Assembly (NCBI GenBank): GCA_904063045.1
Contig: CAJFCJ010000005.1
Span: 420,685-484,684, forward strand
Source of the DNA: Dimorphilus gyrociliatus
Lineage: Eukaryota; Animalia; Annelida
Reading direction: 5' to 3'
Length of the DNA: 64,000 nucleotides
Shown here: one piece after another, positions 1,653-35,332 of the stretch
Numbering within the stretch: the stretch's first letter is position 1
Layout of the letters: the number at the start of each line of letters is the position of its first letter
Translations under genes and position numbers: made by a program
The notes under the pieces: generated by a model
Databases searched by the model: none
What the model was told of the DNA's origin: nothing
Seen by the model: only the letters and a program-made list of their open reading frames with translations

Positions 1653-3772
1653 ATGTTAAGTCTACAGGATACAATAATTCGCTTCATAGGAAATAACTTT
1701 GAATTTGTATTTGAAAAGAATTGGATTGACGATATAACCATTCCTTTTACACTATCTGAAAAGATCTTTCATTTTTTGGAGAAAACTGGAGGAATTACAG
1801 AGAAAAGACTAAAATATTTCAGTTCGGATAGATGCCAATTATGGACCGTAAAATTGAACACGCATAATTATGAAGATGTATCGAATTTGTCGTTTTTGAA
1901 CGATCATCCATTGAAATCTATTAAGATTTTTAATGTTAATAAAGAGAAATTTGAATATATTTACGAAATTATTAAAGAGAGAGATTTAAAGGAATTAACG
2001 CTATGTCATGGAAAGTTTTGTGATAATAGTGAAAAAGACATATCCATATCAGAATCACTTTCCAGTATCGATCGTATAGCTGGATTCAAAAATCTTACTA
2101 AATTGAATTTAAGCTTTACAGATTTAACTGCAGATGGATTAAATCTGTTGTGCAGCAAATTGAAAGATTTACAAAATCTGAATATCTCTGGAACAAAAGT
2201 TTACAGTTTAGAAAGTTTACTACAATTGAAAAATCTTATAGTTTTTAAATATGAAGATAAACCTTTTTCATTCTATCCGAAAGATTTACTTGTATTGAAC
2301 AAATTGAGAAAATTAAGAGAGATTTATTTATACGATTATACTTATCTTCCTTATCACGAATACGTGCAAGATTTTAATAATTTGCTTTGTAATTGTTACT
2401 GGGAAAAACTGGAATATTTTTCAATTTATACAAGTCCAAAAATCGATTGTCAAGTTATAATGTAATAGTTGAAATTCAATTATTTCTACTATTAAAATTA
2501 ATATAACATTCTCCTATTTCGATTTACAGGAACTTTATCGATAAACATCCTCGATTAAAGCTCTTTAAAACTCAATATACAAGAACTTTAAAAGAAATTG
2601 CAAGAGCATCGAAACTCATCTTTCCAAGATTTCTTAAGGTAGTTTAAAATACACTTTAAATTATTATCGTATTGATAATATTCCCTCTATTTTCTTTTAT
2701 AAGAAATTGAATATTGACTGCTTGAACAACGAATTAACTCTATTTCAAAATCCAAAATTGTCCTGTCACGATTTAGATGAATTTCTAATTTTTCTCTGCA
2801 GTAACTTTAGACATCAGTCTAAGGAAACTAAGATTAGTATAGTTAAAAAGTTGGATGTAAAGAATTTGTTATTTGTAAGTATACTAGTAAAAAGTCTTTA
2901 GTCTGTAGAATATACCTTGATTGATATACTTTCTCTTCTTCTTCTTCTTTAGGTTATGAACAAGAGAATCCGCATTTTGAATGACAACTACTCTTATCAA
3001 ATGTCGAATCAAAGTGACATTTCAAATCTCGGATCGGTTATAGAAATTCTATCGCTAATGGACTACACACCAGAACATCAGATGGAATGGATAGAAATCT
3101 ATATATCTATATGCAAAATATTTAGCAGTCTAAGTAAGCATGATTCATTCCATTTGTTCTTAGGCTTTTACACGTTTTTAATGTAATACTTTAGCCGATT
3201 TGGATCTGGAACACTTTCCAATGCTCTTTCCATTGATAGAGATAATTGGTAAATACGATGGTCCACTCTTCTGGGTAAGGGCACATTTACTTTCCTTTAT
3301 ATAAAGCTTCCTCTAAATACATCCACTTTGCCTTTAGGTTGTTAATATAAAACAATTTGGATTAAAGTTAATCCATTGGTATAACTTTTTGGGATATAAT
3401 AACGGCAGACAACCACTAAGTATCCTAAAAAAGATGGTTAAACAGAATATCTTTAAATATGTAAGTTTTACCTTCCTCTTTCTCGCTTTTGAGTTATTTA
3501 TAGAAATACAATTTTTTCCCTTTGCCTTTTTTCATTTTCAGTTGGAAAAGGACGAAATAATGGATATAGTCAATATTATTAGAGATCATGTTTCGGAATA
3601 CTTTTCGGAAGATGATTATACTATGACAAATGACACTTTTAATAAGACAGTTAAAGACTACATTGATGTTTGCATTAGTGTTTTGGATAATCATAGACTT
3701 TACAGGGATTATTACATTCAATCATACACAGAGGATATAGACGTTTACGACTGTGACGAGATTGTCTCTTAA
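1653..3772 (+). CDS. ZYG11/ZER1-like VHL-box LRR protein, copy 1 (multi-exon)
   Basis: N-terminal SLQDTIIRFI (BC-box-like) and IPFTLSEKIF (Cul2-box-like); LRRs LTKLNLSFTDL and LQNLNISGT; intron 2462-2529; exon 2 NFIDKHPRLKLFK..IFPRFLK; last exon LEKDEI..., stop 3770-3772. Confidence 0.8.
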
Positions 3773-5296
3773 AGAATCGTCGGGCGGATTTGGTACAATC
3801 TACAGAAATTGACACTTTGTTTTTATTAATCATAATATTATTAATCAAGTAGAAAGATCTGCATATAAACAGCATTAATCAAATGAGATCATTTAATATT
3901 TTAACGTGTACTATTCTCTTTGAAATCTTCATTGTATAAGTTTTTCTTTGCTATCTTACACAACAAATAGAAATGCTTACAATTGTTAATTAGATAGGAC
4001 TATTTCATAATGAAAGTATAATTGAATAGTTTCGATTACGTAACAAGTTTAAACTTATATCAACTAGTACTTTTAAAATGAAAGATGATAGTAAATAATG
4101 AAATTTTATGTGAAAACTTAAAGGTTCAATGGAAACAAAGTTTATACATTAGACATGAAACACGAAATATATTTCTTCTAGTTATTTAACTTTCCAAAAA
4201 CTGGTACAGTCTGTAAAAAAGAAAAGAAAACAAAACAATTGAAATCAATAATCGAAAACGTGATGGAAGTAATTTTACGAATTTAGAGATGACCTACTTT
4301 CATTGTTTCAACCAACGAAAAGTTCCGATCAGGCAAGAGTTAAAAGATCAAATTAAAGTATAAAAAATGTTAAAAAAATAGAAAAGAAAACCGTCAGCAC
4401 GTATCAAATAATACAAAAAAAGAATAGAATTGTATGTTTTAAAGGGAGTTCCTGTTTTTTACTTAATGAATACTCTTTCATATAAGTATAATAAGACAAT
4501 TAGAAGGTTCTTAATGACATTGTAGTATATATATATACAGTATATTCTAATTGTATACTTTTGAACAATAGATGTAATTATTAATCATTTTCATTCAATG
4601 AATACCTTCTGATTACTCTTTATCTACGTTTTTTGTAGATCATCAACTTTCTTTAGAGTTTGTTAAATATCTAAATAGTTCAAATAGAAAAGTTACTGTA
4701 TATACAGTATTAATAGCGTGTAAAACTGTTTGTAAAATGATAATACAAAATTAAATTATAGGCTTAATTTCAGAAATTGAATATCACTTGGTACAATACA
4801 AACATAGAACAAAGACAATGGAAAAAAAGATATCAAAGTTCTATAAGTTTAACCTTACTTATTAACTGTTGATGCCTGTACTATATAGACGAAACTTTAA
4901 GGTGACATTTTGTTCCAAAGTGTTCATCTTCAATTCACTATTGACCAGTTACTTAATCAGAGATAGTAAAACATTATTATTCCATCCTACTGTTTAACAT
5001 TGAAGGACGGAGAAAATAGAAGTAAAAATGACTAAATCTTTAATTATAAAAAGTTCTACGCTTCCTTTCTTAGATTTTAATTTTTATTCCTCTTTTATAT
5101 ATTTACTTCCATCTGTTTTGAAGAGGTACTGAAGGTAATAAACCCTTTATGTTACATACCTGAAATATTGTTAATACGTGAGTAATCTAAAGAATACATC
5201 CTTCGAAAAATCCAATGCTTTCTAGCATAGAAAAAATGACTGAAAATGTTATATTTAAGGCGTTTATATTCAAGTTTTTTAATCATTCAATTCAAA

Positions 5297-7656: not shown

Positions 7657-7728
7657 GGGGAATTAGCTCAGCGGTAGAGCGCTCGCTTAGCATGCGAGAG
7701 GTCCCGGGATCGATCCCCGGATTCTCCA
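7657..7728 (+). tRNA. tRNA-Ala-AGC: tRNA-Ala(AGC) copy 1
   Basis: Full cloverleaf, G3:U70 pair, anticodon loop TTAGCAT, animal-type ATCG T-loop. Confidence 0.97.
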
Positions 7729-7874
7729 GGTTTCTTTTATTTTTACGAAAATACTGCTTTTTTTTTCCTATTACAAATATTCTTTAATGATAATTCTTCA
7801 ACCATTTTTACAAGTAAAACAACTAACCTTCCATTATTATAAAACCTCCAGTATTATAAAAATGTACAGCAGTA

Positions 7875-7887
7875 GCGACATCTAGTG
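7875..7887. promoter_or_regulatory. CTCF-like motif GCGACATCTAGTG
   Basis: Same motif family as 1140; lies between tRNA-Ala copies 1 and 2. Confidence 0.4.
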
Positions 7888-8192
7888 AATTTAATAACTT
7901 TACTCTATTAGAGGAGGTTTTTCATCTTTTGGGAAAGGAGAAGAAAGAGAGATGGAGGAGGAGGAAAAGGAAATGGAATAAATACAGTCATTTTACCATA
8001 TGAATGTTTATTATTAATGCTATTGAACTTGCCTCCAAATAGTTGAATACATTACATAAAAACTGTTGATAGGCCTTCTTCTCACTGATCGTCTTACAAA
8101 AGAGTTACGAATAGAGATGTATCAAGGTCGATTGTCATGTAAATTGCTGAAATATCTAAGAAACAATCAATACTGCAAGTGTTTTTACATCA

Positions 8193-8264
8193 GGGGAATT
8201 AGCTCAGCGGTAGAGCGCTCGCTTAGCATGCGAGAGGTCCCGGGATCGATCCCCGGATTCTCCA
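8193..8264 (+). tRNA. tRNA-Ala-AGC: tRNA-Ala(AGC) copy 2
   Basis: Identical to copy 1. Confidence 0.97.
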
Positions 8265-8640
8265 GTGATGTACCTTTTTTTTGTTATCTCTTAAATATTC
8301 TTTATTTTTTTAAAATAATACTGAAAAGAAGAGAAATGTATGCTTGGTCTCATTTTATCTATTAATCTATCTATCCAGCTACCTTCCGTAGCCTTTTCAA
8401 GTATTATCTTTTCATAATCTTTTACAATAATCTATCAAAATCGTTATTATCAGTTAGCACTATTCGTTAAACTACATACACATAATGTTGAAATAATCTA
8501 TGTTTCGTGTTCAAGTTGGATAGTTGTTCTATTCCAGTTTCATTGTAATATTAATGACATTCCACGAAAGGAATTAATATTAATAAAGTAACATTCAAAA
8601 CAATACAATGGAATAATTGAAGTCATTTTGAATAAAAACA

Positions 8641-8712
8641 GGGGAATTAGCTCAGCGGTAGAGCGCTCGCTTAGCATGCGAGAGGTCCCGGGATCGATCC
8701 CCGGATTCTCCA
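8641..8712 (+). tRNA. tRNA-Ala-AGC: tRNA-Ala(AGC) copy 3
   Basis: Identical to copy 1. Confidence 0.97.
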
Positions 8713-8864: not shown

Positions 8865-10885
8865 TCATTTTGTTGAGATAAAATGATTTTTAAAATAGTC
8901 AATTTTCTTATCTAAAGTTAAAAGTTTAGGTTCGCAGTGAATACAATTTCCGGGTTTTCTATTAACACAAAGTATGGATATACAGATATTAATCCTTCTG
9001 AGTAAATTCGCTTTTTCATATCTAGAAAATACGGTAGCGGATTTATAATTTTGATGTAAAATTTCAACAATATTTAAAACTTGTAAAATTTCATTCTTCT
9101 TTAACTGATTGATTAAAAAAAAAAAGTAAATTGTACCAAAAAGGCCTATTGGATTATGTTTATGAATATTTTACCTTAATAAATCCAGAATCTTTGAATA
9201 TCTTTGATAAAAGTATAGAATTTCTTTCCAAATAAGATAAATACGGTTGAAGTCTAATAAGGCTCATACCTAGAGTAGTTTTCTTCCTTAGCTTGTATAT
9301 ATTATTGTATTAAAATTTCCATAATTAATTAGAAAGTGTATGAAAACTTACAATATTAATTAAATAGTAACGCTCTAATAACAATTGGATTAAAATCTCG
9401 TAATGAACATCTTCGAAATATATATATCTTTCGGTAGATTTTAAATATAATATTGAACAGGCTGCATCGACGAATCGTATCCAATGAACTTGATTATTTG
9501 GTAAAACTTTTAACCAATTAAGAAATATCAATATATATCTAAAATTATGATTCTTTTCAAGGTCAAAGTCATTTTCCGAGTGAACAAAATTTTCGTAATG
9601 AATATTATCGATTAAAATCTGAAAGGTAATATGATTTTGATGAAGAAAGGCGGAGAAAGATAATAAAAAATATGATATTACCTTAAAAAGGTCATCGGTA
9701 TTAATTGATTTAAAGAAGGCTATCCTTTCATCGATTGTCTTGTGTTTGAGTATAAGGTACATTTCATAGAAAAAGTGAAAATTACCAACAGATTGAAATC
9801 CTGATGTAGTTATTAGAGTTAATTCGTAGTTAAAATCAATACTGTTGTCGCTTCCCTAAATTGAAATTAAAAGTAAACGAATGAAAATAAAGAAGAAGAG
9901 GAAATTAACCACAAGTCTTGGAAATAATACGGGCGTTACTTTTGTGAAATTTGAACGATTTTCACCAATAATTTGATCTATATGTAGTACTTTCAAATAT
10001 TTATGATTATCGATAAATAACCTTTAATAAAGAGGATTATATTAATTGACTTGAATATATATATATATATATATAAAACAATATATTTACGTACCTAATA
10101 CTAGATTCATCTATCTTTGAACATCCCGATAGACTAAAGTATTGTATATCTTTCCAATAGATATTATGAAATATATCCTTTATCCAATCGCTATTCACCT
10201 TATATTTCCAAGAAATGTTGTTTGAAAATTCAATTTTTATTAATTGAGGTATCTTTTTCAAATGGTTAACTTCGTTATAGTTAATACCGTTCTTTAGTGA
10301 AGAAAACTCTATTAAAGAGAGTTTAGTGAGCTTTGGAACGTGTTTTAACGTTTTTACAATAGTCTTTGAAATATTTAAATCTTCTAATAACGTAAACTTA
10401 TTACAGACAATCTTTAGGCAATTATCATTAAAGTTTGTAGAGATAACGTGTAATTTTGTCAAGTTTTTAAATCTAGATATTAATTTTATTGCTTTAGTCG
10501 GCTTGTCTTCTAATAGTCTTCTTTTAATGGTTAAACTACATTTTATCAAAGTTAATTCTCTTAAATCAGATTCCCTTAAATACTTAATCCAATCGGATAA
10601 TCCAAATTTTTGAATATGATTCACGTATAAAGTTTTTATATTCCAATTTTTCATAAAGGAAAAACACGAACATTTTCCAATACGCGTACCGTTGAACTTG
10701 ACATTCTCCATATAAATATTATCAGTATTGAACAATTGAATATCTTCTTCGCTAATTCCATAACTTTTCGTATCCAAAAACCTAAAAATCTTTTCTGCAA
10801 GATAGAATGGAATTTTCCTTTCCTTCAGAGTTAATTTAGGATTATCCTTAATGTAAAAAAGTATTATTTCTTGCAAAGAAAGCAT
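8865..10885 (-). CDS. ZYG11/ZER1-like protein, copy 2 (multi-exon)
   Basis: MLSLQEIILFYI / KIPFYLAEKIF; LRRs; exon 2 LFIDNHKYLK..VLFPRL; last exon LKKNEIL..ISTK, TGA at 8865-8867. Confidence 0.8.
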
Positions 10886-11729: not shown

Positions 11730-12584
11730 ATGTTTAGTTTACAGAAAATCATCTTATATTTTATCAAAAGAAACCTAAAATTAGTTAGCCAGAAAACATC
11801 AAAATCTATATATCTTCCTTTTTATCTATCGAATATAATTTATGAATTTTTAAATGATTTTTATGATGGAATTTGGAGAGAAGACTATCAATTCTTCAAT
11901 CGACCATTTACGGAATTAACTAAAGTTTCAATATTCGGAGAACGAATTGAAAAATCAAGTAATTTATTATTTTTGGTCAATCAACCGTTGAAATCATTAA
12001 AGGTATATAAATTGAATAAATTTGATATTACGGAATGGATTGATTACTTAAAATTAATTAATTTACAAGAATTAACAATCAACTATTGTAAAACTAGTAA
12101 ATTAAAATCTCAATTAAACTGGTTTTCTCTACTTGTAAACACTAAAGTTTTAATTAAATTGAACGTTTCATATACAAATTTCGATGATGAATGCCTAAAT
12201 TTCGCTTGTAACGAATTATCATTATTAAAAGATTTAGATATTTCATTTACAAGAATAAAATCATTTGATTGTTTAAAGAAACTGGAAAAACTGGAAAGTA
12301 TTAAGTTATGGAGACATAACGGTAGAAGAATATCAATAGCATTTCAAATTATTAAACAATTAATGAATTTAAAAAAGATTAGTATTGGTTTTTATTATAA
12401 TAATTTTAAAATAGATGAATTTTCGTTAAATGGATGCAATTGGAGAAATTTATATTATTTCAATACGAATAAATTAAATAATCTGTCAAAAGTTTCAATA
12501 AGGTTTTTTAATAAAATTTTCTTTTTTTTGTCTTTTTATTTAATTCTCTTTCTCTCTCTGTCTCTCTCCCTCTTTCTCTTATGC

Positions 12585-12630
<46 letters not shown>

Positions 12631-13910
12631 CTATCCATCCGTCTCTCTATCATTCATTTCCTTTCAATTACCAAGGAAATTTATGAATAATCATCCAAAA
12701 TTAAAGTATTTCAAATTGGGAATGAATTACGATACAAATCTAAGAAACTATTCAAACATCTCTACAATTATATTTCCAAGGAATATATCCGTAAATTTTC
12801 AATCGAAAAATTTATACTTTAACCAAGAGATTATCGAAATGAAAATTCAAGAGGAATTTGAATTATTGAAAAATCCGGAAATTGATGGAAATGATTCAGA
12901 AATATTTTTTGAATTTCTTAATTATTATCTATATACGAAAGATATCTCCTATACAATATCATTTTTGAAAATATTCAATAAAAACGATTTATTACAAGTA
13001 ATATTAATTTCTATTAGTTTGTTTCTTTAAAAAAACAATTTTATACTTTTTTTTGTAGATTGCATTTAGAAATATTCTTTGTATTGCTGATTTCTTTCAA
13101 GATCTTACCTATTCGGATTCGGATTGCGATAATCTTGAATATACACTTTATGTTCTTCTCTGGTTGGAATATTTACCGGAACAGGAACATCTTTGGATAA
13201 ATATAATAGAAATACTTTTTAAATTATATTTTCGGTATTTTCTTAAAAATATTTCCATATTTCTATATTAATAATGTAATTTATTCCCTTATATTTTCAG
13301 CTTAACAATTTTAAGCCCTTATAGACAAGTTATTGAAATGTTTGTCAAATATCAACACTTCCTTAGAAGGGTATTAATATTCTTTTTAAAAACTAAACAA
13401 ATATATTTATACAGCATATATATATATATATATATATATCTATTAATAGATTGGTAATGAACACGAAATAATTATAACACATTTACTTATTACCCAAGTA
13501 CATCCTTACGATGATATTCATATAGAACACTTAAATTCACTTAAGAAAAATGCTTCATTAACTGCGGTAAGTCTATTCATCCCTCTTCTTTCATTTATCT
13601 TGTAACAATACATTCTTTTCTTGTTCAGGTTGACGAATTAAATTTAACTAATACGGTAAGAGGAATATTCAATAATTTCAATCCAATATTTCGTTTTCAA
13701 AGAAGACCTCAAGTATTCCTCAAATATAATGTTTGCTTTAAGAAGTTTTATAAGAAATGGTTAAGCCTTGATAGTTTGGAGATAAAACAAGATTTTCTCT
13801 TTCCAATGTTCTTATCAATTGGAATAATACCTTTCAAAGAGAATCATGACTTGAAAATATATTTTGAAAACATGGATAAACTACTTAAGACAATTAAAGA
13901 TTGTTTTTAA
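11730..13910 (+). CDS. ZYG11/ZER1-like protein, copy 3 (multi-exon)
   Basis: MFSLQKIILYFI / YLPFYLSNII; LRRs; exon 2 KFMNNHPKLKYFK..IIFPRN; last exon VDELNL..IKDCF, TAA at 13908-13910. Confidence 0.78.
12545..12650. repeat. Compound (CT)n/(CTAT)n microsatellite in first intron of copy 3
   Basis: Directly visible; explains the spurious SLSLSL tails of two ORF-track entries. Confidence 0.9.
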
Positions 13911-14751: not shown

Positions 14752-14823
14752 GACTCCGTGGCGCAACGGTAGCGCGTCTGACTCCAGATCAGAAGGTTGC
14801 GTGTTCAAATCACGTCGGGGTCA
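14752..14823 (+). tRNA. tRNA-Trp-CCA: tRNA-Trp(CCA) copy 1
   Basis: Full cloverleaf, anticodon loop CTCCAGA. Confidence 0.97.
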
Positions 14824-15131
14824 AGTTCAATCTTTTGTTTTCTTTTTTTATTATTATTAAAATCCTTTGTTTACAAATATCCTATTTAATCTTATCAACT
14901 AAATCAAACTATATGAGCAATAAGATTAATAGTACATCCTGCGATAGATAAGCTTCTTACTTATTTATATTCAATAGGAAACAAGTAGTGTTATTCTATT
15001 GAGTGCTATATAATATCGCTCAAAAGCTTTTGAGTAGTATTCAATTTTATTTTGAACGATTCGAGTGTTTCTCTTATCTTCTACTCTTGCCCAGTTCACT
15101 GCCTGGAAATACACGTGTTGTTTTAAGAAAC

Positions 15132-15203
15132 GACTCCGTGGCGCAACGGTAGCGCGTCTGACTCCAGATCAGAAGGTTGCGTGTTCAAATCACGTCGGGG
15201 TCA
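15132..15203 (+). tRNA. tRNA-Trp-CCA: tRNA-Trp(CCA) copy 2
   Basis: Identical to copy 1; shares 3' flank AGTTCAAT. Confidence 0.97.
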
Positions 15204-15345
15204 AGTTCAATTTATTTTTTTTGTATTTTTACTGTGAATCGTCTCTATTAGGACAACAAAAAAAATGACTGTGTGCTTAAGCCTATAAAACAACAGCAAT
15301 TATAATAAGTTATTATTGCAGTAATAACAGCAAAAAGATGTATAA

Positions 15346-17502
15346 TCAATACGTTCGTAGACTTGACATGAAATATTTCTCCAAATTCGAAATATCGACA
15401 TGAGCATCTACAGATTTTCCTTTAAGGTTAACTTTTAAAATTGATAACCATAACAATAGAAACGATGGTGAAAATTGCGTATAAACTCTGGAGAACATGT
15501 CGTTACCATATTTCAAATGTAAAGATGAGAATTTTTTAAGGCATTCTAAAGTGTTCTTAAACTCTTTATCGTCAAGCTAAACGAAATAAAGAAAAGAGGG
15601 TATTTATTGAATGTTATTCTTAATAGGGTAAAGGTTATGACCTCGTCGAAAATTCTTTCATCGTACATTTTAGATAAAATATGAATAATTTCTCTATTCA
15701 CTTGAATATTCATTGTTAATCCGCAAAGTAATATTCTACCCAATTTAGTTTTATTAGTAATCTGTTTGTAAGGATGAAGAGTAATGACAGCTATAGATGA
15801 TATTTAATACGTAAATAGATATGATATAACCATATGTAATAGGTCGTAGTTTCTTGAAATAATCCTGTAAAATCTTTCCAATCGATCAGCGTTATCAGTA
15901 TGTTGAAAGATATGATCTAAAATAGATAATTAAATATTTAATTAGAGTTTACTTAATCGCTTTCTTATCTTTCTGTTTTAAAGAATAAAATCAAACCAAA
16001 TTTATAAATAATAGTGCAAACTAAGTCAGTTATTTTCATTTTATATTCTATATTATGACCATCTAAGGAGATTTCAATCCAATCAAAGACCGTTGCTATA
16101 TCGGATAAGTAGACAAATAGTACGTAGTGATCAGACGATCTTTGAGAAAATAGATAGTCAATAGTATCGGTTGTTCGTTCAAGAATCTTTGAATGAATAG
16201 TAAAAATATATAATTAAATATGATAATTATACTAAAAATCAGCCTATTACCACAATTAAATTGTCCATATCGACAAAACTAAAGAAAGTAACTAGTTGTT
16301 GTTTTGTCGAACCTTCCATTCTTTTCGTAAGAAAGAAATAAAACCAAGATAGGTCGTCAATTGTTAATTTTGAATGTTGTAATAATTTCATTTCGTATAC
16401 AATATCGACGTTGTTTATATCCTTTTGATTAAAGTATTCCAATATAAGATTATCCATCCATTAATCGTTTTTTACTTACCTTTAAACATCTTGGATATAT
16501 TTTTGGTGAAATATCGGAAAAGTCAATTTGCGGTCCTCCAGTATTGAAAACATTACTTAAAGGAAACTTGTACAACATTATCTTAAAGACTTTAAGCTTT
16601 GGATGATTCGATAGAATCTTACTATTAAGAAAAATCATTGTTTTATGATTAGTTCATGAATCTATATATTATTTAATCATCATAGGTTTTTACTTGATAG
16701 TTTCTCTATCCATATCCCAGAATCCTCTAATGCTAAAATATTCCAAATTCTTCCAATAAACACCGCGAAAAAGATCCTTTAGAAAACCTTTTCTAAAATC
16801 TAATAGACAAACTTTATTATCGTATAGAGAGATTTCTTTTAGCGAAGGAATCTTTGTCAAATGATAGATTTCATTATAACAAAACCTTTCATCTTTTAGA
16901 TTGTATTTAAGTATTTCCAATTTTCGCAAAGATCTCAAAGGCCATAGAAACATGACGAATGTTTGAGAAATATCTAATTCTACCAGATGATTTAAATTTG
17001 GAGCAATAAGCTCCAACACTTTATAATCTATGTACGAAGAGCTTAGATTCAATTTAATCAAATTACTATAATTAATTAATAACTTTTCAATATTATAATA
17101 GAATTCGTTGTTAGTACAGAATTGATAGATTTCATCGCATTCCGATATGGTTAATTCATTAAGATTCGCATTCTTTACGCTTATTAATATATCTTCAAAT
17201 CTAAATCTATTCAAACAGCGCAATTCCAACTTTTCCAAATTATGATGACCTTCTAAAAATTGTTTACATTTCAAATTTGACATACGGCGTCCATCAATCT
17301 TTATGTTGGATAACTCGGTTATATTCTTATTAAAAAGCTTACATACAGAATCGTTAGATACGCAGGATTTCTCAGCGAAATAATTAAAAACCATCTGAGA
17401 TATTTGATAAGGAATTCTTCCTCTTCTCCTAATATAATGTTCAAATACTTCTTCGGTGTCTTTCCATATTGCAAGAAGAGTTAATCTCTTAAGATTTATC
17501 AT
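15346..17502 (-). CDS. ZYG11/ZER1-like protein, copy 4 (multi-exon)
   Basis: MINLKRLTLLAI / RIPYQISQMVF; LRRs; exon 2 SNHPKLKVFK..DFSDISPKIYPR; last exon LDDKEF..LRTY, TGA at 15346-15348. Confidence 0.78.
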
Positions 17503-20585: not shown

Positions 20586-20716
20586 TCAAGTAGTAAAATA
20601 ACCGTTGAAATAATATAAATGATAGACAAGCTCATATCTAAGATAAATGGATAAGTATTATAATAAGTGTAAGTAAACAAATCAGAGGATTCTCTCAAAT
20701 TTATTCCTTAATTCGT

Positions 20717-22692
20717 TCAATCGAGCTTCTTCCGAATTCTTCTCCAACGTTTCCAGTAAGCATCTATACGATTCCTCAAGTAAATCTCTATTAATCTGAA
20801 TATATAAATCCAATTAATAACTATACTTGTTAGAAAATATGAAATAGGAAATTTTAATACCTTTTCTCCTGGACGAATACCGCCAACAAGCTGTAATAAG
20901 AGTCTATAACCGTATAGTTTAAGCTTTTCCAGTTTAGCTATTTTCATCAAACTATGAATTACAATGTCTCTGTTGACAATCTGTTAGATTAATAATAAAA
21001 CAGGGAACTTTATTAGTATGATTTAAATATAGAGGCGATTTCAATATTCAATCATCTTTATTACCAGAAAAATTAAATTGTATCTTATTAGAAGGAGCCG
21101 AGAGGAGATTTCAACCATTATATAATATTGTTTCTCTACTCTCTGATCGTTTGCTATTTCTGTTATAACTCTATAACTTGTTTCGATTGTCACTAGCCAA
21201 TAATTTTCATTTCCGGAGAATACTTTAAGGAATTTGATAAATTCTAAAGATTTAATGAATGTAGTACATTTATAAGGTATATTCCATTCTGTTGAATTGA
21301 TATAGTTTTCATAACGAATCCTTTGAATAAGCATCTAATAGTAAGAAAAATATAAAAGTGTATGGATAGAGAGAAAAAGAAGAAGAAGGAAAATGTCCCA
21401 TCTTCTACCTTCCATAGGTTATCCTTATCAATATTTTCCAAAAGATTAATCATAACTTCATCGTCATTATCTCTAATTGTACTAGTCAAATAATAAAGCA
21501 TCTCTTCATTCTCTATAATGCATGTCTTAGGATTTTGAAGATTTAGTATTTCCCGATTAAAATTAAGTTGCGATTCTCTATTCTTTATATTTATAGAACA
21601 AAGAAAGATGGAAGACAGTTAATTGCAAATGCATTTTAGAACGGTCTATACGTTTTCTACTTATTATTTATACTTACAAAGATATCTTTTGGATAAACTA
21701 TCGGAGATAGATGACAATAGTAGGATGAATAGGAAATATTGTAATGTGATGCGTATATTCCCAAGAATACATACTCCAGCTTAGGATGATTGTCTAAGAA
21801 TCGTCTAAGACAAAAAGAAAGTGGTGAATATGTAAAAACTATTAAGAGAATGAGTTAAAAATGATTATTTATTTATTTACCTTACAGTAGATTCGTACAT
21901 TAGAAATACACCTTCAATTGAAAAATACTTTAAATTCACCCATATTTTTTCATTCATTAACTCGTATAACCAAGATTTTGGTTTTATATCTCCAGCGTAA
22001 CCTTTCGATTTGATATAAATACCTTCTAGATTCGGTAATTCTCTTAACAAGTTGTATTGACCAGATTCTGATAGTGTGTTTATTAAGTAGGTAGTAAATA
22101 TTCGAAGATTTCTTAGTTTAACTATCGAGGTTATATTTTGAACGTCGGTAGCTACGATATTAAATTCTTCCAGGTTTGGAAGAGAAGAACAAACGTACTG
22201 GAAACATTCGCTGTTGAATTTTGTAAAACTTACATCTAAACAGATTATAGTTTTAATATGGCATAATCTTTTAATAGCTATAGAAGGCCCTCTTGATTCT
22301 CTTTGACATTCGCCATAACTAAGAAGGCAGCCATTTATAGATAAATCCGTTATTGGTGCGTCTTTAATATTATCAATCCAATCAGTTAAAGCCACATTAA
22401 CCATACAATGAATATGAAATGTTTTTAATGGCAAATTTTTAAAAACTGATAAGACTTCGGGATTATCTATTCTCCTTCCATTGATTTTTATACTGTCAAT
22501 TGACGATTGTAGCAGATGAAAGAGTCTTAGTCCGCTCATATCCACGCCAATTTGACATGAATTTATCATTTGTAATATTCTCTCGGCCATTAGATTAGGC
22601 ATTCTAAACTTTTTATCTTTGTACTTTTCATATACAAGTTGACTATTTTCTCCAATATAGCGATAAACTATTTCCAATAGCGTGAAACACAT
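20717..22692 (-). CDS. ZYG11/ZER1-like protein, copy 6 (multi-exon)
   Basis: MCFTLLEIVYRYI / RMPNLMAERIL; LRRs; exon 2 RFLDNHPKLEY; 3' end approximate (ORF 20717-20950). Confidence 0.75.
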
Positions 22693-24039: not shown

Positions 24040-26382
24040 CTATTCTAACTCTTTGGCCAATGAATTTATGGATGATACATTTATGATATTGTAGAGAGAG
24101 AGAGAGAGCAAGCTAATAAAATTTTTTGCCTTAACAATACTTTTTATTATACTCTTATACAGAAAGATTACGAAGAGATTCAGATCCTTTCGGGAAGTAT
24201 TTTTAAAAAAAAATCGATTATTACATTCGAAAAATAAACAACTTGAAATGCGTATCTGTGCATTGAATGTATTATTTATTTTCAAAGAGAGAGAGAGAGA
24301 GGGCTTTCTCTCTGCATTTGAAAGAAAAGTTGAATAGGCTTTTTATATAGGATAACTTTTCGAATAGAGTCATTAATTGGAATTTTTTTGTTATTTTATA
24401 ACAATTTCCGTGCTGTTGATTATATTTCAAAATCAAACAATACAATTCTATATCATTTCTATAGGAGAGATGATTTTGCATGTCTCTCTGTATTCCTTCC
24501 ATTTCTAAATTACATTTAAACTTCAAAGAGGAAACTATTGAGAGAATATCTGCCAATGGTGCCTAGAAAGAAGATAAGGAGCCATTAAAATTTTCAGCAT
24601 GTAGATAAAAAATTATTATCATACGTTAATAAATGCTCTATCGCTATAAAGCTTCCACATAAGATTTGAGGTATTCTTTCTTATCAAACAGGATTTTGTT
24701 GAATGAAATAAGATTAATGCTAATTTGGTTTTATTCGCTATCTTTAAGGGTAGAAATATAATAAATATTAATAATATGAATAGCATTTTAAAGCGTCTAT
24801 TACGTACCAAGTTAATAAATTGATATTTATTACTAATCAATTCGGTAATAGTTTCCAACAAAGTTACGTAATACATGTAATCCGATTCCTCTATATGCCC
24901 ATTTTCCAGACATTTATATCCAAGATGAAGTATTTTAATCCAATTGATATTACAGTTAGGAACATGTAATAAATATGTAAAGATTTTAAGAGCTTTTAAT
25001 ACTTTTTCTTCTACTACAAGACAACTCTGTAAACTGTAATGATGCCTGGATTTTCTCTCAATATAATTGACAAGTATCTATAAAAAAAAACATGAAAAGA
25101 GTGAAAATTTTGATTAAAGTAATAAATTTATTATTTATTTATTACGTCTGTAAGTTGTTCAAGTCGAATCGATTGAAAAAATTGAATAATATCGTTCAAG
25201 TTGTTTGATTCTATATATTTGATTAGAAATACTATCATTTTTCCAGTTCCATTTCCAGATATATTCAATTTCGATAATATATGTATTTCATTATTGAATA
25301 AATCAATATTAATTCTTTTATAATTCCACTGAAAAATTAGGAAAATTGGTAAAATTGTTAAGTTAATCTCATTAATAATAATACCGGAAATATCCTTGGA
25401 AGAATTATTGACGATATTTCATTAATATCTCGCTTTAATAGACGATCCTCAAAATCAAATGATTTTATTTTAAACACCAAAAGTTTCTTGTAAGTTTGTA
25501 AAAATTTGCTATAAAATATTAAAGAAATCATATTTTTGATTTATTTATAAATGAAAAGATTGATATTTACATAATTTCCGATTGATCTTCAATTAGACAA
25601 GTATCAATTGAAAATACTTTTAAATTTAACCAACAATTCAATTTTCTTAATGAACTTAGCCAGTATTTTTGTATTGAAGTTTCTGTATAAGTATTACCGT
25701 GAAGTTGTATCTCTTCTATATTCTTTTGTTGTCTTAAATAGAAAAATATGTCTGTATTTAATGGAAAATTCATATCTTTAGCTTGAAATTTCTTTAAATT
25801 CCGTAAATATTTCAATGGTTTGTATTGTTGAACATTTGTTTTGGAGATATTCAAATCGTTAATTGATCTTAATGATTTACAAATATATTTGAGGCAATCG
25901 TCGTTGAAATTTGAACAGGAAACGTCCAATTGTAGTAAATTTTTAAAACGAACAATCAATTTATAATCTGGCAATGGATTGAAGCAATTCGAATTATTAG
26001 AATCATTTGATCTAGTCTTCGATATAGTTAACCTTTTTAGATAGTTAACATCAATGAAATATAACCATTTCCTTAATGGTAAACTTTGATAATTTTCAAT
26101 ATATGCGTCATCCAATTGGTGCTTTTTAAGAAATGATAATTTCTTAGTATTTTCGATATTTAAAGTACTAAATTTAATTGAAGTTAGATTTGTCGTTGCC
26201 GAAGTAAAAAAGTCCAAATTTTCTTCTAAAATACCCCAATTTCTTTCATTCATATAAGAGAATATCAAACTTGATAAATAGAACGGTAAACGTATATTTC
26301 TTTTTATAGAATTATTGATAATTAAATTACTATTATTTCCAATATAATTAAGAACAATATCCTGCAATTTTATCATCGTCAT
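24040..26382 (-). CDS. ZYG11/ZER1-like protein, copy 7 (multi-exon, 3' end uncertain)
   Basis: MIKLQDIVLNYI / RLPFYLSSLIF; LRRs; exon 2 KFLQTYKKLLVFK..IILPRIF. Confidence 0.72.
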
Positions 26383-27115: not shown

Positions 27116-29145
27116 ATGTCAGAATCGATAGAAGAATATTTTACAATTCTTAGTCTTCAAGATTTGAGTTTGATTGCTTTGTCAAAGAAGCCTTACAAGG
27201 TCTTTAATCATCAATTCCATGAAAGAAATATAAGAATACCATCGGCTATTGTTGAAAAGTTATTTCGATATCTATCCTTACAATTTACTGGCTTCCCAGA
27301 AGAATATCTTCAATATTTTTCATCCAGAACATGCAATTTTCAAAAGATTCAATTTGACGCATCTCAATTAACGAATGCTTGTTCAATGGATTTTCTTAAA
27401 GGTCACGCTCCAAAAGAAATTGATATACAGAAATTACAAGTTAGCGAACTGAGACAATGGTTAGCTTTAATTAATCCTGAAAATCTAGAGAAATTATCTA
27501 TTAGCAAAGGCTCTTTAGACTTTTCTATAGATTTAAGATCTGATTGTTTAAATATAGAAAACATTACTATTTTAAAACAATGTAATAACCTAACAACCTT
27601 GGATATTTCCATTACACCATTCAATACGGATTGTTTGAATTTTATTAGTTGTAATCTACAGAAATTAGAAAGATTGAATATTTCAAAAACAAGAGTAAAC
27701 AATCTTAGTTCTTTAATTCATATAAACAATCTTATAGAGTTGAATTGTTCCTACTGCCATTTTGAAAGCTATCAAATTTCTTACGATATCTTAAAGGATT
27801 TAAAATCTTTACAAAGGTTGAATATAACTCAATGTAAAATTAATAAGAAAAGTACTTTCTACGTAAAGGATTTTGTTAACTTATCCTTTTGGCCTAATAT
27901 GGAATTAATAGAGATTTCTAATAATAGAATAGTTAGGGATGACGAAGCTTTTGAGTAAGTTCATATCTCCTTTGAAAAAACTATATTCTATTCTCTATTC
28001 ATTTTTATTAAAAAGGGAATTTCTAGATAATCATCCGAATGTGGAGATTATTGGAATTTTTGAAAATATTATCCGATCCTATGAAGAAGTACGCGAGAAA
28101 CCTTCTCATATTTTTTCAATTGATGTAAGTGATATAGATAGTTTTTGTTGATGTTACTTGAATCTTTCGCTTAATTTAAACAGTCGGTAAGGTCAATGAT
28201 TAATTACTATATGAATCGTCGATCTGGAATGTGTATAGATCCAAATATATTCTACTATAAAGGAGTAAACAAGAGATTATTGGGGGAAAAAGACTCAGAA
28301 GACTTTGGCGTTCTTAAAGCGTTATTATCTGTAATTATTCAGTTAAAAGGAATATAACGTCATCTTCTATTCATATTCATTTTATACAATTTTTTTTATC
28401 TAGATCTTATTGGATCTTGGTGACAGGAACGAATATATTTTCTATAAAACTGGCGAATTTAAACAATACCATCCAGTTGATTGTTTATTAAGAGTAACTG
28501 ATTATATAGACCTGTCGAGAGATAGTTTTAAACGCTTGAAACTTATTCTTCTCTGTTCAAAAATATTAAAATATTTCATAGAGAACGATATTGCTAAATT
28601 TAATTCGTATATAATCGTTTCCTGCTTTCATTTACTCGCTAAACATTCGCCATTTTTGGATATTGTAAGCATTATCATTAACATTATTGTTCTATTTAGT
28701 AATTCTTTCTTTTCCCAAAGCCTACAGATAGATTTGAACTTTCAATAAACGCTTTAAAAGTCTCCCACTATTCGGAAGATAGGGAATTATCCGTAGCAAC
28801 TCTGAACGCTATTTTAACTGAAGAACTATTAATGACGGTTAGTTTAGCTATAAAACGGGTAAAGAATCTATTATAATTAATTTATCTTCTTATGAACAGT
28901 TACCCGAGAAGAAATTTGTCATTTTCCTAAAAACCTTTGAGTTTTTCCTACATAGTTTCCCATTTAGAGAGATGAGAAATATTCCTTTTATGAATAAGTT
29001 TGTTTCAAGAATCGTTGGCATTATTCAAAATCATAAACAACTTGAAATAGAAAAGGATATTTTACACTGGAGAGGAAATCCTTCATTTCAAATACAAATT
29101 CCATCAAAAATACGTATAAACATTAGATTATCAAAATCTCCATAA
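27116..29145 (+). CDS. ZYG11/ZER1-like protein, copy 8 (multi-exon)
   Basis: ATG at 27116; LSLQDLSLIAL / RIPSAIVEKLF; LRRs; exon 2 EFLDNHPNVEI; last exon LPEKKF..LSKSP, TAA at 29143-29145. Confidence 0.76.
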
Positions 29146-29851: not shown

Positions 29852-31927
29852 ATGGTGTGGACTTTACAAGAAATAGTACTCCGTTTTTTTGAACGAAATA
29901 TCCATCTAATTCTATTAAAAGAAACACAAATTCCATTCTACATTTCAGAAAAGCTTTTTAGATATTTGGATAAAAGAAATTATGGAATTTTAGAAGAAAA
30001 TTTGACTTTTTTCGCTTCAGATAAAACTCCATTACATCGTTTAAAATTTAATGGACGAAGAATTACCGATATATCGTCATTTTCTTTTCTTGAATATCAT
30101 TATCCAAGATATTTATCAATTAACGGTATTCGTAAATTTGGTACTTCTGAATGGATACAATACGTCAATTTTAATAATTTGACTGAATTATCTATAAGCA
30201 ATTGCCTACTGTGCAAAGTAAATACCAATGAAGATAAAGCTACAACAGTAAATTCTTTCATTCCAAAATCCTGTCTAAATAAATTAATAAAGTTGGATTT
30301 TAGTTGGACGGATTTTGATGATGGTTGCTTAGAATTGATAAGCGATTGTTGTCCATGTTTAGAAGATCTGAATATTTCTTATACAAACGTAAAAAGTCTA
30401 CAAGCGATAACTAAATTAAGAAAATTAATTAGATTGAATTATCACGAAAATGCTTGTTGTTTGCACGATTTTGAAGAATTGAAATATTTATTAAAATTAC
30501 CATTTCTTCGATATTTAAGCATATCGTACAATACTTCAAGATTTCGTAAAACACCTTTAGATTGGCTAAAAAATCTCCTTAGAAAAGCTTCTTGGCAATA
30601 TCTACAGCATTTTTTCGTTACTGGAAGATGTGAACTCGAAGAAGAAGATGTTAGGTTCGATTCTTTAATAGGTTTCTCTTTCGTTTTTAAATATTTCTTA
30701 ATATTTCAGATATTTTCTTCAAAGTCATTCAAATATGAAATATTTTGGTATTTATCTATTTTCTGGTAAGAACTTTTCAAGCATCTCTCCAATAATCTAC
30801 CCAAAAAATGATCAAGTATATAACTTTAGTAATACGAGATATACTGGGTTACCATTTGTAATATTGAACAGATAAAGAAAAATATTGAATTTATCGATAT
30901 GAACGAATGCGTTGACAATTCAATTAATTACGGTGAAGTTAGAGAAAAAGCATTATATATTCAACAAACATATGCGGAATTAATTAAAGTGAATGAGGGT
31001 CAAAGGTTAAATATATTAAATTCAATAGTTACAGACAATTTCTGGGAGGTAAGATGAAAATTTACTGTCTTATTTTAATACAATTTGAAATAATATGTTT
31101 ATAGATTCTCTTTGAAAATATTGACTATTCAAGAAAAGTGAATACTATACATTTCTTTAAACCATTTAACAGCCAAATGATATTTATATATTCGTTTATG
31201 ATCATAAATTGGATTACTGGATTACCGAATAATCAAGAATATTGGTTAAAAATACTAGAGATAATATGCGGCATATTAGAATATAATTTAATGAAAGACA
31301 TTCAATTACATAATTCATTACTTGTTGATTTATTCTCTGAAATTATCATTAAAAAATTCCATCTATTAAGTCTGGTAATAACTTAAAAACAATAATTTAT
31401 TCATGCAATTAAAATCTCCTAACTCCTATCTTTCTATCTATTCACATTAGATTACGAAAAAGATCAAGCTTGGTACAACCTTATTAAGGATGATCAAATC
31501 CAATTGTCGTTCCGGTAATGTTTTAATACTATTGGTGAAAATATTTCAAGATATTGATTTTCAAAATGTATGAAAATATTATCTCATTTTTATCATCTTT
31601 TTTCCATTGATTTGTTGAAATTTTCTACTTTTTTTCTTACAGTTGAATGAAAACGAAGTTGATAATCTGTTGAAAAGTTTTAAATACTTTTGCAATATAT
31701 TTGCTGATTATTATATTAATTTTTCAAATGAGAATGAAATTAAACACTTGAAAAGGGTTGAAGAATTATGCGTTTCCGGTCTATCGAATTATTTGGATTG
31801 TTTGGAAGATAGTAAAGAACCAATATTGAATGATTTAAAATGTAAATTGTTAGCCTCGTTAAAGATAACTGCATTTAGGCCAAAATTACCAAATTTTTAC
31901 GAGCTTTGTGATTCAACATCATGTTAA
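29852..31927 (+). CDS. ZYG11/ZER1-like protein, copy 9 (multi-exon)
   Basis: MVWTLQEIVLRFF / QIPFYISEKLF; LRRs; exon 2 YFLQSHSNMKYF..IIYPK; last exon LNENEV... Confidence 0.78.
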
Positions 31928-32326
31928 ATAATCATTAATTAGAAAACGGAGAGAGAGAGAGAGAGAGAGTTCGGATAAAATTGAATTGATAAAATACAAA
32001 CAACTATAGTCGTTTCTTTTTCAAGTTTTCCCACTGATCTCTTTCTATTAAGCCATAATCATTCGCCCTAGACCTAGTGGAGGTACTTTTTTTAAACAAT
32101 ATTAGCCTAAACCACCCACGGCACATTAAACATTCTCTTACATTTTCTTATCTAATGTTATCATCGATTACACAGTAACTATTACACGAATGTCAAACAT
32201 CTCGTTTGATATTATAATAAGGCGCTTTTTTCTCTATAAAAACAATTGTAGTATAACTGTATTTGTGCATTAAATATTTTCTTAAAAGCTAAAATATAAG
32301 GAGAACTGGATTTGAAAAAAAATTGT

Positions 32327-32398
32327 AGGTTCCACCGAGATTTGAACTCGGATCGTTGGATTCAAAGTCCAAAGTGCTAACCGTTACACCATGGAACC
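32327..32398 (-). tRNA. tRNA-Gln-TTG: tRNA-Gln(TTG) copy 1
   Basis: Reverse complement of the 32957 copy; anticodon loop CTTTGAA. Confidence 0.97.
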
Positions 32399-32956
32399 TC
32401 AGATATTAATATTTAGCTATATTATTCTTTCCTTCAGGATTGATTTCCTATTTATTAAGGCGATAGCAAAATAAAAAAAGAAAGAAGAACAAAATGACAT
32501 ATACAGTATACTATATCTTATTCTTATATACAGTATTTTAACTTGTTCATACAACTTTCATAGTATTCTCTGTTAGAAAAATGAAATATTGAATCCCAAT
32601 GGCAGAACAATCAATAAAATGGATAAAAAAACTGGAACTATAGCTTTCACCTCTATAAATATTGGACAATACTTTAGTTAATTGAATTGATATAAGTAAT
32701 TATAAACTAATGTAAAGGGAAAAGGATTGAAATTCATTTTAGTTTGAATGGCTTTTGAAAGAAAGATACATATTTGAAAGTAATTAGTCAGACTTTGTTT
32801 ACTGTTGTCTGGATAGAGATAGAAATTTTTCGTAAAACAGTAGTTTTTACCTATATTACTAATACAATACACTATTAATTATAAACGATTAGCCCACTAT
32901 TTCTTTAAACCAGAGACAAAGTAAACATCCATAGTTTGGTTAGAATTTACAAAAAA

Positions 32957-33028
32957 GGTTCCATGGTGTAACGGTTAGCACTTTGGACTTTGAATCCAAC
33001 GATCCGAGTTCAAATCTCGGTGGAACCT
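32957..33028 (+). tRNA. tRNA-Gln-TTG: tRNA-Gln(TTG) copy 2
   Basis: Full cloverleaf followed by a T-run terminator. Confidence 0.97.
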
Positions 33029-33147
33029 ACATTTTTTTTTTTTGGTTTTTTTTTTAACCTTCTATCCTAGAGATTTTTGTTTGTAAAACAAGAGAGAGAG
33101 AGAGAGAGAGAGATTTTGGAAATACTTACGCTAAACATGTTTGTCTT

Positions 33148-33221
33148 GGCCCGTTAGCTCAGTTGGTTAGAGCGCCGTGCTGATAACGCGGAGGTCGTGG
33201 GTTCGACCCCCATGCGGGCCA
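33148..33221 (+). tRNA. tRNA-Ile-GAT: tRNA-Ile(GAT) copy 1
   Basis: Cloverleaf with anticodon stem CCGTG/CGCGG and loop CTGATAA (GAT at 33182-33184); eukaryotic Ile-type body. Confidence 0.93.
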
Positions 33222-33316
33222 TATATAACTTTTTGTTTTCGATTATCAATAATAAATTAATTAACTAATATTTTATTGTTTTGAATATCAAATATTAAAA
33301 ATAAATCAATAAGAAT

Positions 33317-35332
33317 TCAAGTAAAAAGCTGAACTAAATCCAAGATAATTCCATTGATTTGTAATGTGAAGCAGTTTTTTGTCCTCATTTTAAAATTCCT
33401 TTGAACAATTAACAGACTAGAGATACATTGATTCCTTATCATCTGAACATACTGTATCAAGTTCCTTCGAACGTAGACTTTCTGGGAAAATTTAAGTCCT
33501 TCTAGTAGTGTTCGAGTAGAATTGACAAATTCATAAATATCTAGGTCGGGAAACTGCAAAATGAAAATGAAGTGTTAAAGCTGACGATACGATATGAATT
33601 GTTTTACATTTTGAAAATTAATATCCCTTAGTAGTTTTTCCAGAAGAAGAAATATATTCTTTGTCCAAGGATTATAATGATTCTTTCTTAGAATTCTTAT
33701 AGCCAGTTTGGTTTTGCTTGTTATCTAAAAAGTAAACTTAATGAACAGCTGTTCAATTGATAAAAAAAAGGAAAAGTAGAAATATACCTGATTCAAGAAA
33801 TGATAATGAATTAGTAGTAATTCACAAATTCCGTTATTAATTCTCAAATCTTCATTAATTAAGAGAGTATATACAATTCGTATTATTGTTTTTCTAAAGT
33901 CATAATAACCTGGTAGTATACTTAAATAATTGAAAATGGTAAAACAGGATGAGAGAATACACTTTTGTTCAAAATCTCTTGAACGATTGTGAATAAATCG
34001 TTTATTCCTATCAATTAATTTAAGCATAATCTAGAAGAATTTTAATAATTCAGAATACTCTATTGTTATTATATGTAATATTTCATGATTTACCTTCCAT
34101 AGTTCATCAACTGGACCAGATTGAAAAAATTTCAATCTCTCTTCTTTGGTTTTACGTTCAAGTTTAGCTTTTAAACTATGCAGACAAAATTCAGACTCTT
34201 CCTCGCATTCTTGAAAACCATTCAAAGCCTTAATAATAAATTCAAGGGAATATAATGTAGTAGTATGATGGTTTTTCTGCAAAGATAATTCAATTTATTA
34301 AACTCTTTCTCGTATTGAAATAAGACGTTCTTTACCACTTGAAATTTTGGATAATAGATGTTTGAATGATAACAGTAATCTTTTACTAAATTTGTATCAA
34401 TATCAATTAAATCAATCCAAAAAAATTGTAGATTAGAGTGCAAACTTAAAAATTGTCTAGAAGAAGAGAATCTAGGTCATATATTTTGAACAGTAAATGA
34501 ATTATATACCTTATACAGTATATATTTACCTAATAAATAGAAAATTAACACGAATCTTTGTACATATATTGAAATATTTCAAATTGATTGAAAATGGTTT
34601 TGTAAAGAAATATTCAATCCATTTTTCAGTTATGACATTAAAATAGATTTTCTTAATATGAATTCTTTCTAATAATTGAATTTTTTTTAAATGAATTAAT
34701 TGTTTAAATGATATTCTATAATTATTTGATGAAAATTGAATATTAATTAAATTCTTTAATCTTTTTAAATATGAAAATTTTGTAACATTTGTATTTGAAA
34801 TGTTCAATTCTTGTAAAAGTTGTAATTTCTTACAAATATACTTTAAACATTCATCATTGAAATTTGTATTACTAATATTCAATTTAGTTAAATTCTTGAA
34901 TGGTTTTAAGCAGGTTATATCTTTTAAATAATGAAAATTCTTTAAATTATTTGATTTTCTAGTCAATTTACAACTGATTATTGAAAGTTCATGTAAATAT
35001 TTTGGATTAACGATTGAAATCCATAGAGATAAGTGAAAATTTTGTATATTATCTACATAAAGATATTGAAGATCATGACCTTTAAGGAAATTTAATGATG
35101 ATAATCTTTGAATCTTTTCACCGTTAAATCGTAAACGATATAATCTTGTATTTTTAGAAGAGAAATATTGTAATATTTCTTCAATTATACCAAAATTCGA
35201 TTCTTCTATAATATGAAAGATATCTTCGCATATTCTGCAAGGCAATTTAATGTCTTTCTTTGAGCAATTTTCAAGAATAGGATACGCGTATCTATCCAAA
35301 TTAAAAAGGCAGATCTCTCTTAAAGATAGCAT
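33317..35332 (-). CDS. ZYG11/ZER1-like protein, copy 10 (multi-exon)
   Basis: MLSLREICLFNL (canonical BC-box Cys) and DIKLPCRICEDIF, close to ZER1 DIFLPSEICDRL as I recall it; FSSKNTRLYRL; LRRs. Confidence 0.82.

Follow-up and report, generated by a model that had tools for sequence, protein, structure and literature searches.

The cryo-EM structure of full-length ZYG11B, a substrate receptor of Cullin-2, has a BC box on the first helix, where L18 inserts into Elongin C and I21, C22, L23, and L26 surround it, and F50, P51, V54, and L58 are also in the Elongin C interface (PMC13201589). The L18S and P47A/V49A/F50A/P51A mutants of ZYG11B lost the degradation of a reporter substrate, and the ARM domain of the protein consists of nine repeats over ~430 residues (~300-728) (PMC13201589). 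In most metazoans, zyg-11 is present as one or two genes, and the zyg-11-like genes of Caenorhabditis, which number 19-37 per species and lie partly in tandem arrays, are the source of the zeel-1 antidote (PMC3144186). Here we analyzed a 64,000-nt stretch of the miniature annelid Dimorphilus gyrociliatus (assembly GCA_904063045.1, contig CAJFCJ010000005.1, positions 420,685 to 484,684; hereafter the window), which contains a 34-kb array of ten related genes, g1 to g10. Database proteins matching the window at 94-100% identity are annotated proteins of D. gyrociliatus or represent the clusters of such proteins. We conclude with moderate confidence that the array consists of old and diverged paralogues from a ZYG11/ZER1 branch of the Dimorphilus lineage. 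Their products would dock onto Cullin-2, would each have their own substrates, and seem to lack the pocket for the Gly/N-degron.

When three first exons were compared by phmmer with the six-frame segments of the window, ten related open reading frame (ORF) segments were detected with pairwise E values of 1e-11 to 1e-50. The orientations from g1 to g10 are + - + - - - - + + -, and a profile search built on the ten revealed no eleventh copy, fragment or pseudogene across the whole 64 kb. The original prediction, made from the letters alone, had counted ten genes in these orientations, which is confirmed, and its bounds, 1653 and 35332, coincide with the positions where g1 and g10 begin their coding sequence with a start codon. 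Gene models came from a small dynamic program that takes account of splice sites and had been trained on the window; three spots were patched by hand after reading the DNA. The spliced models comprise 6-7 exons and 5-6 introns of 52-173 nt, and all of them have intact ORFs of 538-596 aa, as expected from the earlier claim that every copy keeps open exons. The genes are as follows.

1653-3772, plus strand: g1, 567 aa, 7 exons (1653-2461, 2530-2638, 2704-2874, 2953-3133, 3195-3274, 3338-3460, 3542-3772); splice-aware model and family alignment.
8865-10885, minus strand: g2, 565 aa, 6 exons (10885-10095, 10021-9913, 9855-9682, 9618-9352, 9291-9175, 9104-8865); splice-aware model.
11730-13910, plus strand: g3, 579 aa, 6 exons (11730-12502, 12676-12997, 13059-13234, 13301-13370, 13450-13566, 13629-13910); model.
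15346-17502, minus strand: g4, 582 aa, 7 exons (17502-16694, 16621-16480, 16421-16251, 16186-15997, 15916-15831, 15761-15642, 15576-15346); model, with three introns confirmed by contigs.
18071-20062, minus strand: g5, 568 aa, 6 exons (20062-19133, 19079-18909, 18856-18676, 18611-18532, 18472-18353, 18295-18071); model, with four introns confirmed by contigs.
20682-22692, minus strand: g6, 538 aa, 6 exons (22692-21881, 21804-21678, 21582-21409, 21334-21065, 20980-20861, 20795-20682); model, with two introns confirmed by a 2725-nt contig.
24272-26376, minus strand: g7, 596 aa, 6 exons (26376-25571, 25508-25385, 25328-25146, 25077-24808, 24741-24625, 24562-24272); model.
27116-29145, plus strand: g8, 572 aa, 6 exons (27116-27954, 28016-28124, 28184-28330, 28404-28664, 28721-28837, 28900-29145); model.
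29852-31927, plus strand: g9, 585 aa, 6 exons (29852-30654, 30710-30815, 30872-31048, 31105-31374, 31451-31567, 31643-31927); model.
33317-35332, minus strand: g10, 567 aa, 6 exons (35332-34530, 34456-34336, 34276-34094, 34030-33788, 33724-33608, 33553-33317); model.

The exon-2 donor of g2 is uncertain and was picked to retain the residues VLFPR; the other donor lies 27 bases upstream in the gene direction (exon 2 end 9940). The median length of the 52 modelled introns is 65 nt in a window that is AT-rich (25-30% G+C), and the genome-wide median intron of D. gyrociliatus is 66 nt (PMC7854359). Five intron positions are common to the genes, so that the predicted sharing of intron positions stands apart from two deviations: intron 1 is absent from g5, and an additional intron interrupts exon 4 in g1, g3, g4, and g5 only. 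Intron 1 of g3 (12503-12675) is 173 nt long, more than twice the usual length, and is full of (CT)n and (CTAT)n microsatellites.

The public protein models of several family copies are faulty. The model P0046 is identical to g8 at 99.7-100% and lacks residues 117-232, and DgyrCDS8598 (P0001, 1631 aa; L003:10001-16959) covers three first exons and is a fusion of three adjoining paralogues. The gene g6, whose C-terminus is the shortest of the ten, corresponds to the annotated DgyrCDS3222 (P0002).

The copies are strongly diverged, as had been claimed. First-exon identity to g1 ranges from 22 to 37%, and the mean pairwise identity is 30% in the N-terminal box (first 60 residues), 27% in the leucine-rich repeats (LRRs), and 18% in the C-terminal half. 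L4, P31, and F56 are the only invariant residues among the first 60 positions, and they are kept in 17 of 18 sequences of the wider family. Residues 3-12 of all ten proteins fit [STNK]-L-x3-[ICVTS]-x3-[ILF] (consensus SLQEIxLxxI), which is a BC-box pattern (general form [STP]-L-x3-[CSA]-x3-hydrophobic), and residues 30-38 of all ten fit [ILM]-P-x2-[LIM]-x3-[IVL], a Cul2-box pattern (general form hydrophobic-P-x2-hydrophobic-x3-hydrophobic) that on its own is indistinguishable from the start of an F-box. Thus the BC-box/Cul2-box-like N-terminus that had been proposed is present in every copy. The sole copy with Cys at the 'C' position of the BC box is g10, which reads SLREICLFNL, and the N-terminus of g8 is 10 residues longer than the others. 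Two further motifs turned out to be looser than described. The Trp of the W..L.YFSI motif is found in nine genes (g10 has Ser), with the strict form W..L.YFS in four. The exon-2 motif, F...HP.LK.F...FPR in the original prediction, is real, and H-P-x-L occurs in five genes with looser versions elsewhere and [FYL]-P-[RK] in nine, g8 being without the FPR motif.

A profile of the ten first exons (269 positions) was searched against all PDB sequences, and its positions 3-261 aligned with residues 21-280 of human ZYG11B in one colinear stretch with an E value of 1.8e-6. Internalins and Roco proteins scored higher, and they cover only the generic repeats at profile positions 134-230. The identity to ZYG11B is 14-16%, and the Pfam family LRR_Zer-1 (PF25013), a domain with ten repeats in ZYG11B, gives hits below its cut-off in six of the ten genes. 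Among 1.8 billion representatives, the family was found only in D. gyrociliatus and in Logan assemblies, the remaining matches being generic LRR proteins. A homologue search with an 18-row family alignment was dominated by bacterial LRR proteins and returned P0033 and P0034 as the only family members; neither the annotated proteins of the window nor canonical ZYG11/ZER1 were retrieved.

Kinship with ZYG11/ZER1 is supported mainly by the predicted shape. We folded P0019, a full-length database relative of 570 aa from a 2-kb intronless contig, by AlphaFold with a family alignment (A5) that included some exon fragments. Two other alignments that combined exon fragments with full-length proteins were discarded, since different exons had been placed in the same columns. 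P0019 aligns colinearly with the window genes over the full length at ~25% identity. The model has a mean pLDDT of 79.7, with most values exceeding 85 in the N-terminal half and a range of 60-85 over the helical half, and contains nine strands with LRR-like spacing. In a Foldseek search against the PDB, the best matches were ZYG11B chains, 9lk2_A (E 9.8e-11) and 9bid_A (2.3e-8), both over ~600 columns, and the next match had an E value of 1.8e-6 with a root-mean-square deviation (rmsd) of 32. ZYG11B was also the best match by VIA-align (Z 24.0, 485 residues, rmsd 4.6), which placed residues 1-534 of the model on 15-529 of the chain and L4 of this paralogue on L18. The runners-up, FBXL17, FBXL2, RanGAP, SHOC2, and others, reached Z values of at most 19.6, and nearly all of their alignments end near model residue 310 to 350. 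When the ESM Atlas was searched by shape, zyg-11 B and zer-1 clusters gave TM scores of 0.68-0.71 and all others 0.53 or less; by features, zer-1/zyg-11 clusters scored 0.91-0.93 and F-box/LRR clusters 0.87 or less. The overall fold and domain packing of the P0019 model are as in ZYG11B/ZER1. The relatedness to ZYG11/ZER1 that had been claimed is thus upheld, as regards overall architecture, by the colinear profile match to ZYG11B together with the best structural and language-model matches.

The order of the parts is likewise that of ZYG11B and ZER1, the Cullin-2 receptors of the Gly/N-degron pathway. A helix with the pattern S-L-x3-C-x3-L comes first, and a hydrophobic-Pro box then leads into about ten LRRs, on which a helical solenoid is packed. 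L4 and P31 sit at the places of L18 and P51 of ZYG11B, and both motifs share their hydrophobic register with those of ZYG11B. In contrast to ZYG11B, 27 residues separate the BC-box Leu from the Cul2-box Pro, compared with 33, and the proteins of the window are about 170-200 residues shorter than ZYG11B and ZER1.

Several observations weigh against this kinship or against its functional consequence. The sequence signal to ZYG11B is real but weak: profiles of the first 121 and of the first 175 residues fail to find ZYG11B among PDB sequences, so that the link needs the whole 269-position profile, and no single gene reaches the cut-off of LRR_Zer-1, the best of the sub-threshold scores being 21.6 bits versus 27. 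A language-model search with exon 1 of g5 ties F-box/LRR clusters with Zer-1 LRR clusters. At the 'C' position of the BC box, four of the ten genes have C, S, or T, and the other six have bulky Ile or Val. A profile of the C-terminal half gave no match to PDB sequences at E values up to 10, and Pfam gave nothing relevant. The C-terminal domain folded alone (pLDDT 68) resembles only generic ARM/HEAT solenoids, with Foldseek E values of 0.05 or worse and VIA Z values up to 12.6, which are at the helical-repeat background; ZYG11B and ZER1 were absent from its structure matches in both Foldseek and VIA. Finally, P0019 groups with an array on another contig and not with the clade of the window, and the evidence from the fold is therefore indirect for the ten window genes.

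Some of these points would also be expected if the proteins were F-box/LRR (FBXL-type) receptors of SKP1-CUL1, with [ILM]-P at residues 30-31 as the Leu-Pro of an F-box and the Phe 25 residues further on in the place of its Trp. As in FBXL2, FBXL15, and FBXL17, a three-helix adaptor box directly precedes the LRRs, and Z values of 19-20 were obtained with these proteins for the 300 residues at the N-terminus. The alignments of FBXL17 and FBXL2 begin at model residue 1 and continue across the LRRs (Z 19.3-19.6), FBXL15-like families are among the nearest language-model clusters of g5 exon 1 (0.95-0.96), and our reading of the alignments is that the hydrophobic spacing past the Pro suits helix 1 of an F-box. 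The Pfam F-box matches the [ILM]-P region weakly, with an E value of 0.16 in g5. Among 17 N-termini, however, PF00646 was hit by only one (E 0.019) and PF12937 by one (E 0.064), neither of which reached the cut-off, and the F-box Glu and Trp are missing. As in ZYG11B, the protein starts with a helix that has the BC-box pattern and an invariant Leu, ahead of the Pro motif, and this extra conserved helix and the C-terminal solenoid set the family apart from the three FBXL proteins. The best full-length matches are ZYG11B and ZER1, including the helical domain and its packing on the LRRs. To our knowledge, FBXL proteins have no such C-terminal solenoid. We therefore consider FBXL-type receptors quite improbable and a ZYG11/ZER1 origin the better explanation.

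The C-terminal domain extends for 228-289 residues after the FPR motif, compared with the ~430 residues of the ARM domain of ZYG11B. The original prediction had described this region as especially variable and short, and both points are correct. The structural alignment stops at ZYG11B ~529, leaving the repeats with N567, E570, A647, and R649 and the EloB contact R728/H729 unmatched, and no match to PF22964, the second domain of ZER1-like proteins, was obtained at E values up to 10. Fifteen columns of the C-terminal half are identical in at least seven of the ten genes; apart from N309, P403, and N542, these are all hydrophobic, and just two of the 15 persist in the 18-sequence family alignment. 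For the residues of the Gly/N-degron pocket (W522, N523, D526, N567, E570, A647, R649), there is no counterpart past 529 and no conserved polar cluster, and a residue-by-residue equivalence is not readable. Since the distal ARM repeats and conserved polar residues are lacking, an N-terminal glycine is probably not what is recognised. The window proteins are thus probably not Gly/N-degron receptors, and the earlier label is not supported.

The missing pocket region raises the question of whether the ligase role itself has been lost. The proteins might have kept a ZYG11-like fold as binding proteins, decoys or inhibitors, the N-terminal box being merely structural, and the Ile or Val at the 'C' position of the BC box in six genes would agree with this. 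There is also a precedent in C. elegans ZEEL-1, of which the ZYG-11-like part alone gave no rescue and the antidote activity resides in the transmembrane domain (PMC3144186). Against such a loss, the ten paralogues, at otherwise ~27% identity, all keep L4, P31, and F56, and these residues recur through nearly all of the wider family. If the N-terminal box had no conserved partner, this pattern would be difficult to account for. We thus regard a loss of the ligase role as unlikely. The genes also differ from zeel-1 itself: no copy in the window has a six-pass transmembrane domain, no toxin partner is evident, and a feature of the zeel-1 subgroup is absent, since all ten proteins begin at the BC-box helix with no extra N-terminal exon modelled.

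The stretch 15340-21339 is contained in the public run X1, which is not recorded as RNA and was treated as RNA-derived. When contigs of X1 were aligned with the window, they skipped nine intervals with CT..AC ends, that is, GT..AG on the minus strand. The nine skips match modelled introns exactly with zero mismatches; g4 accounts for three of them, g5 for four, and g6 for two. Contigs lacking the introns derive from spliced RNA, indicating that these three genes are transcribed and that their splicing follows the models. Expression is thus seen for these three of the ten genes, to which the transcript evidence is limited.

In a sister-species sample (SRR23372229, Logan assemblies, 22% G+C), g5 and g4 have orthologues on a syntenic piece, L001, where their order, orientation, and exon plan are as in the window. 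The g5 orthologue is 66% identical over the full length and likewise has no intron 1, and the g4 orthologue is 48% identical. After the g4 orthologue, L001 has one extra family copy and then the tRNA-Trp that also follows g4 in the window. The extra copy (L001:6829-7551), which is missing from the window, has an ORF that ends after 240 residues, before the W motif, and may be dying. A tree was built from Dimorphilus-family sequences, namely the window genes, their sister-species partners, and the copies on contig CAJFCJ010000011.1. Nine window genes form one clade (SH-aLRT 99) with g8 outside, and seven pair one-to-one with sister-species-type proteins at 45-75% identity over exon 1. The partner of g1, P0007, is 58% identical over exon 1, and the values for g2 with P0005, g3 with P0039, and g9 with P0004 are 67%, 45%, and 68%; g7 groups weakly with g10 and has no listed partner. 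The seven one-to-one partners indicate that the array is old and that its duplications predate the species split, after which some copies were gained or lost. Contig CAJFCJ010000011.1 has at least eight further copies, which are placed elsewhere in the tree. One of them (L003:19560-20990) has lost most introns, with a first ORF of 477 codons in a 1.85-kb gene encoding 572 aa, and its nearest relative in the tree is P0019.

Synonymous divergence (dS) of g5 and g4 from the L001 orthologues is saturated (3-15 by maximum likelihood; mostly undefined by NG86). The partners were kept in spite of this saturation, and the genes have therefore been retained for a long time. Because the ratio of nonsynonymous divergence (dN) to dS could not be measured at saturated sites, dN was compared by domain: it is 0.35 in the C-terminal half and 0.14 in the LRRs for g5, and 0.46 and 0.36 for g4. 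An exceptional evolutionary speed of the family was considered and dropped, since the adjoining TRP-like channel shows an identity of only 58% between these genomes, which indicates how distant the sister species is, and the family is not shown to be faster.

With such high divergence between copies, a truncated copy in the sister species, and the faulty public annotation, the array might be taken for decaying duplicated DNA, that is, functionless pseudogenes or annotation artefacts. This is scarcely credible, and we rejected it. All ten ORFs are intact across 6-7 exons, g4-g6 are spliced exactly as modelled, the orthologues have open frames and the same exon plan despite the saturated dS, and the window contains no family fragments.

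The ten copies here and at least eight on another contig exceed the one or two zyg-11 genes of most metazoans (PMC3144186), in agreement with the original prediction of an expanded family, and the array alone has ten or more copies where ZYG11B/ZER1 have 1-3. This appears to be a second ZYG11-family expansion, independent of the nematode one. We found no published ZYG11 expansion outside nematodes in a literature search. Like the Caenorhabditis expansion, it is a lineage-specific, tandem multiplication of ZYG11-like genes with strongly diverged copies. Unlike it, the Dimorphilus duplications are old, with one-to-one partners in the sister species, and the C-terminal domain is truncated. Nematode F-box, MATH-BTB, and plant F-box proteins are expanded receptor families proposed for defence. 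The array resembles these expansions in that numerous copies lie in tandem and keep the end for docking the ligase while the substrate end varies, and differs from them in the adaptor class and in that positive selection is undemonstrated here, since synonymous sites are saturated.

Ten tRNA genes lie among the array members (7657-8712, 14752-15203, 32325-33222, 35697-35979): Ala-AGC x3, Trp-CCA x2, Gln-TTG x3, and Ile-GAT x2. The tRNA-Trp that follows g4 is at the matching place on L001. The TRP-like channel exon (837 aa) and a small upstream gene (58736-61249, 61499-61867) are syntenic in the sister species (L005). Downstream of the array (42904-44115, 52094-53374, 62162-63751) are two LDLa-LRR-GPCR (G-protein-coupled receptor) genes and an RNI-type LRR gene resembling NOD-like receptor (NLR) genes.

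In the explanation that we favour, each protein has three parts: an N-terminal helix with the BC-box pattern, followed ~27 residues on by the Cul2-box pattern; about nine or ten LRRs; and a short helical solenoid of 230-290 residues packed on the LRRs like ARM1-4 of ZYG11B. The pattern and the fold suggest that the N-terminal box docks each protein onto Elongin C/B-Cullin-2-RBX1. The concave face of the LRRs and the variable solenoid would then form a paralogue-specific surface that binds a different substrate in each protein, and the array would be a set of interchangeable substrate receptors. Such substrate diversity and any role in defence are what we infer from this arrangement. The original prediction saw in the array an arsenal against foreign or selfish proteins, for which the only hints are the neighbouring NLR genes and a remark on immune expansions in the genome paper, in which nine families are reported as expanded, mostly as local immunity-linked duplicates (PMC7854359). 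The family is not mentioned there: zyg-11 does not occur in the portions of the text and supplements considered here (PMC7854359). It is conceivable, and in our opinion doubtful, that the array represents a new type of Cullin-2 receptor, with a ZYG11 head and LRRs and with the pocket replaced by a diversifying solenoid, that would constitute a germline-encoded repertoire degrading foreign or cleaved proteins in association with NLRs, as a ligase arm of annelid innate immunity.

Few animal genomes are as small and streamlined as that of the host annelid, and this unannotated family would join the short list of its expanded families (nine in PMC7854359). The only described ZYG11 expansion is that of Caenorhabditis (PMC3144186), and a second, old one in an annelid would mean that the scaffold has been diversified repeatedly. 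The conserved end of the proteins is the one predicted to dock the ligase, and the variable end appears to have lost the sole substrate pocket that is understood. With its natural variants, the family may serve to find out which other targets a ZYG11 scaffold can recognise.

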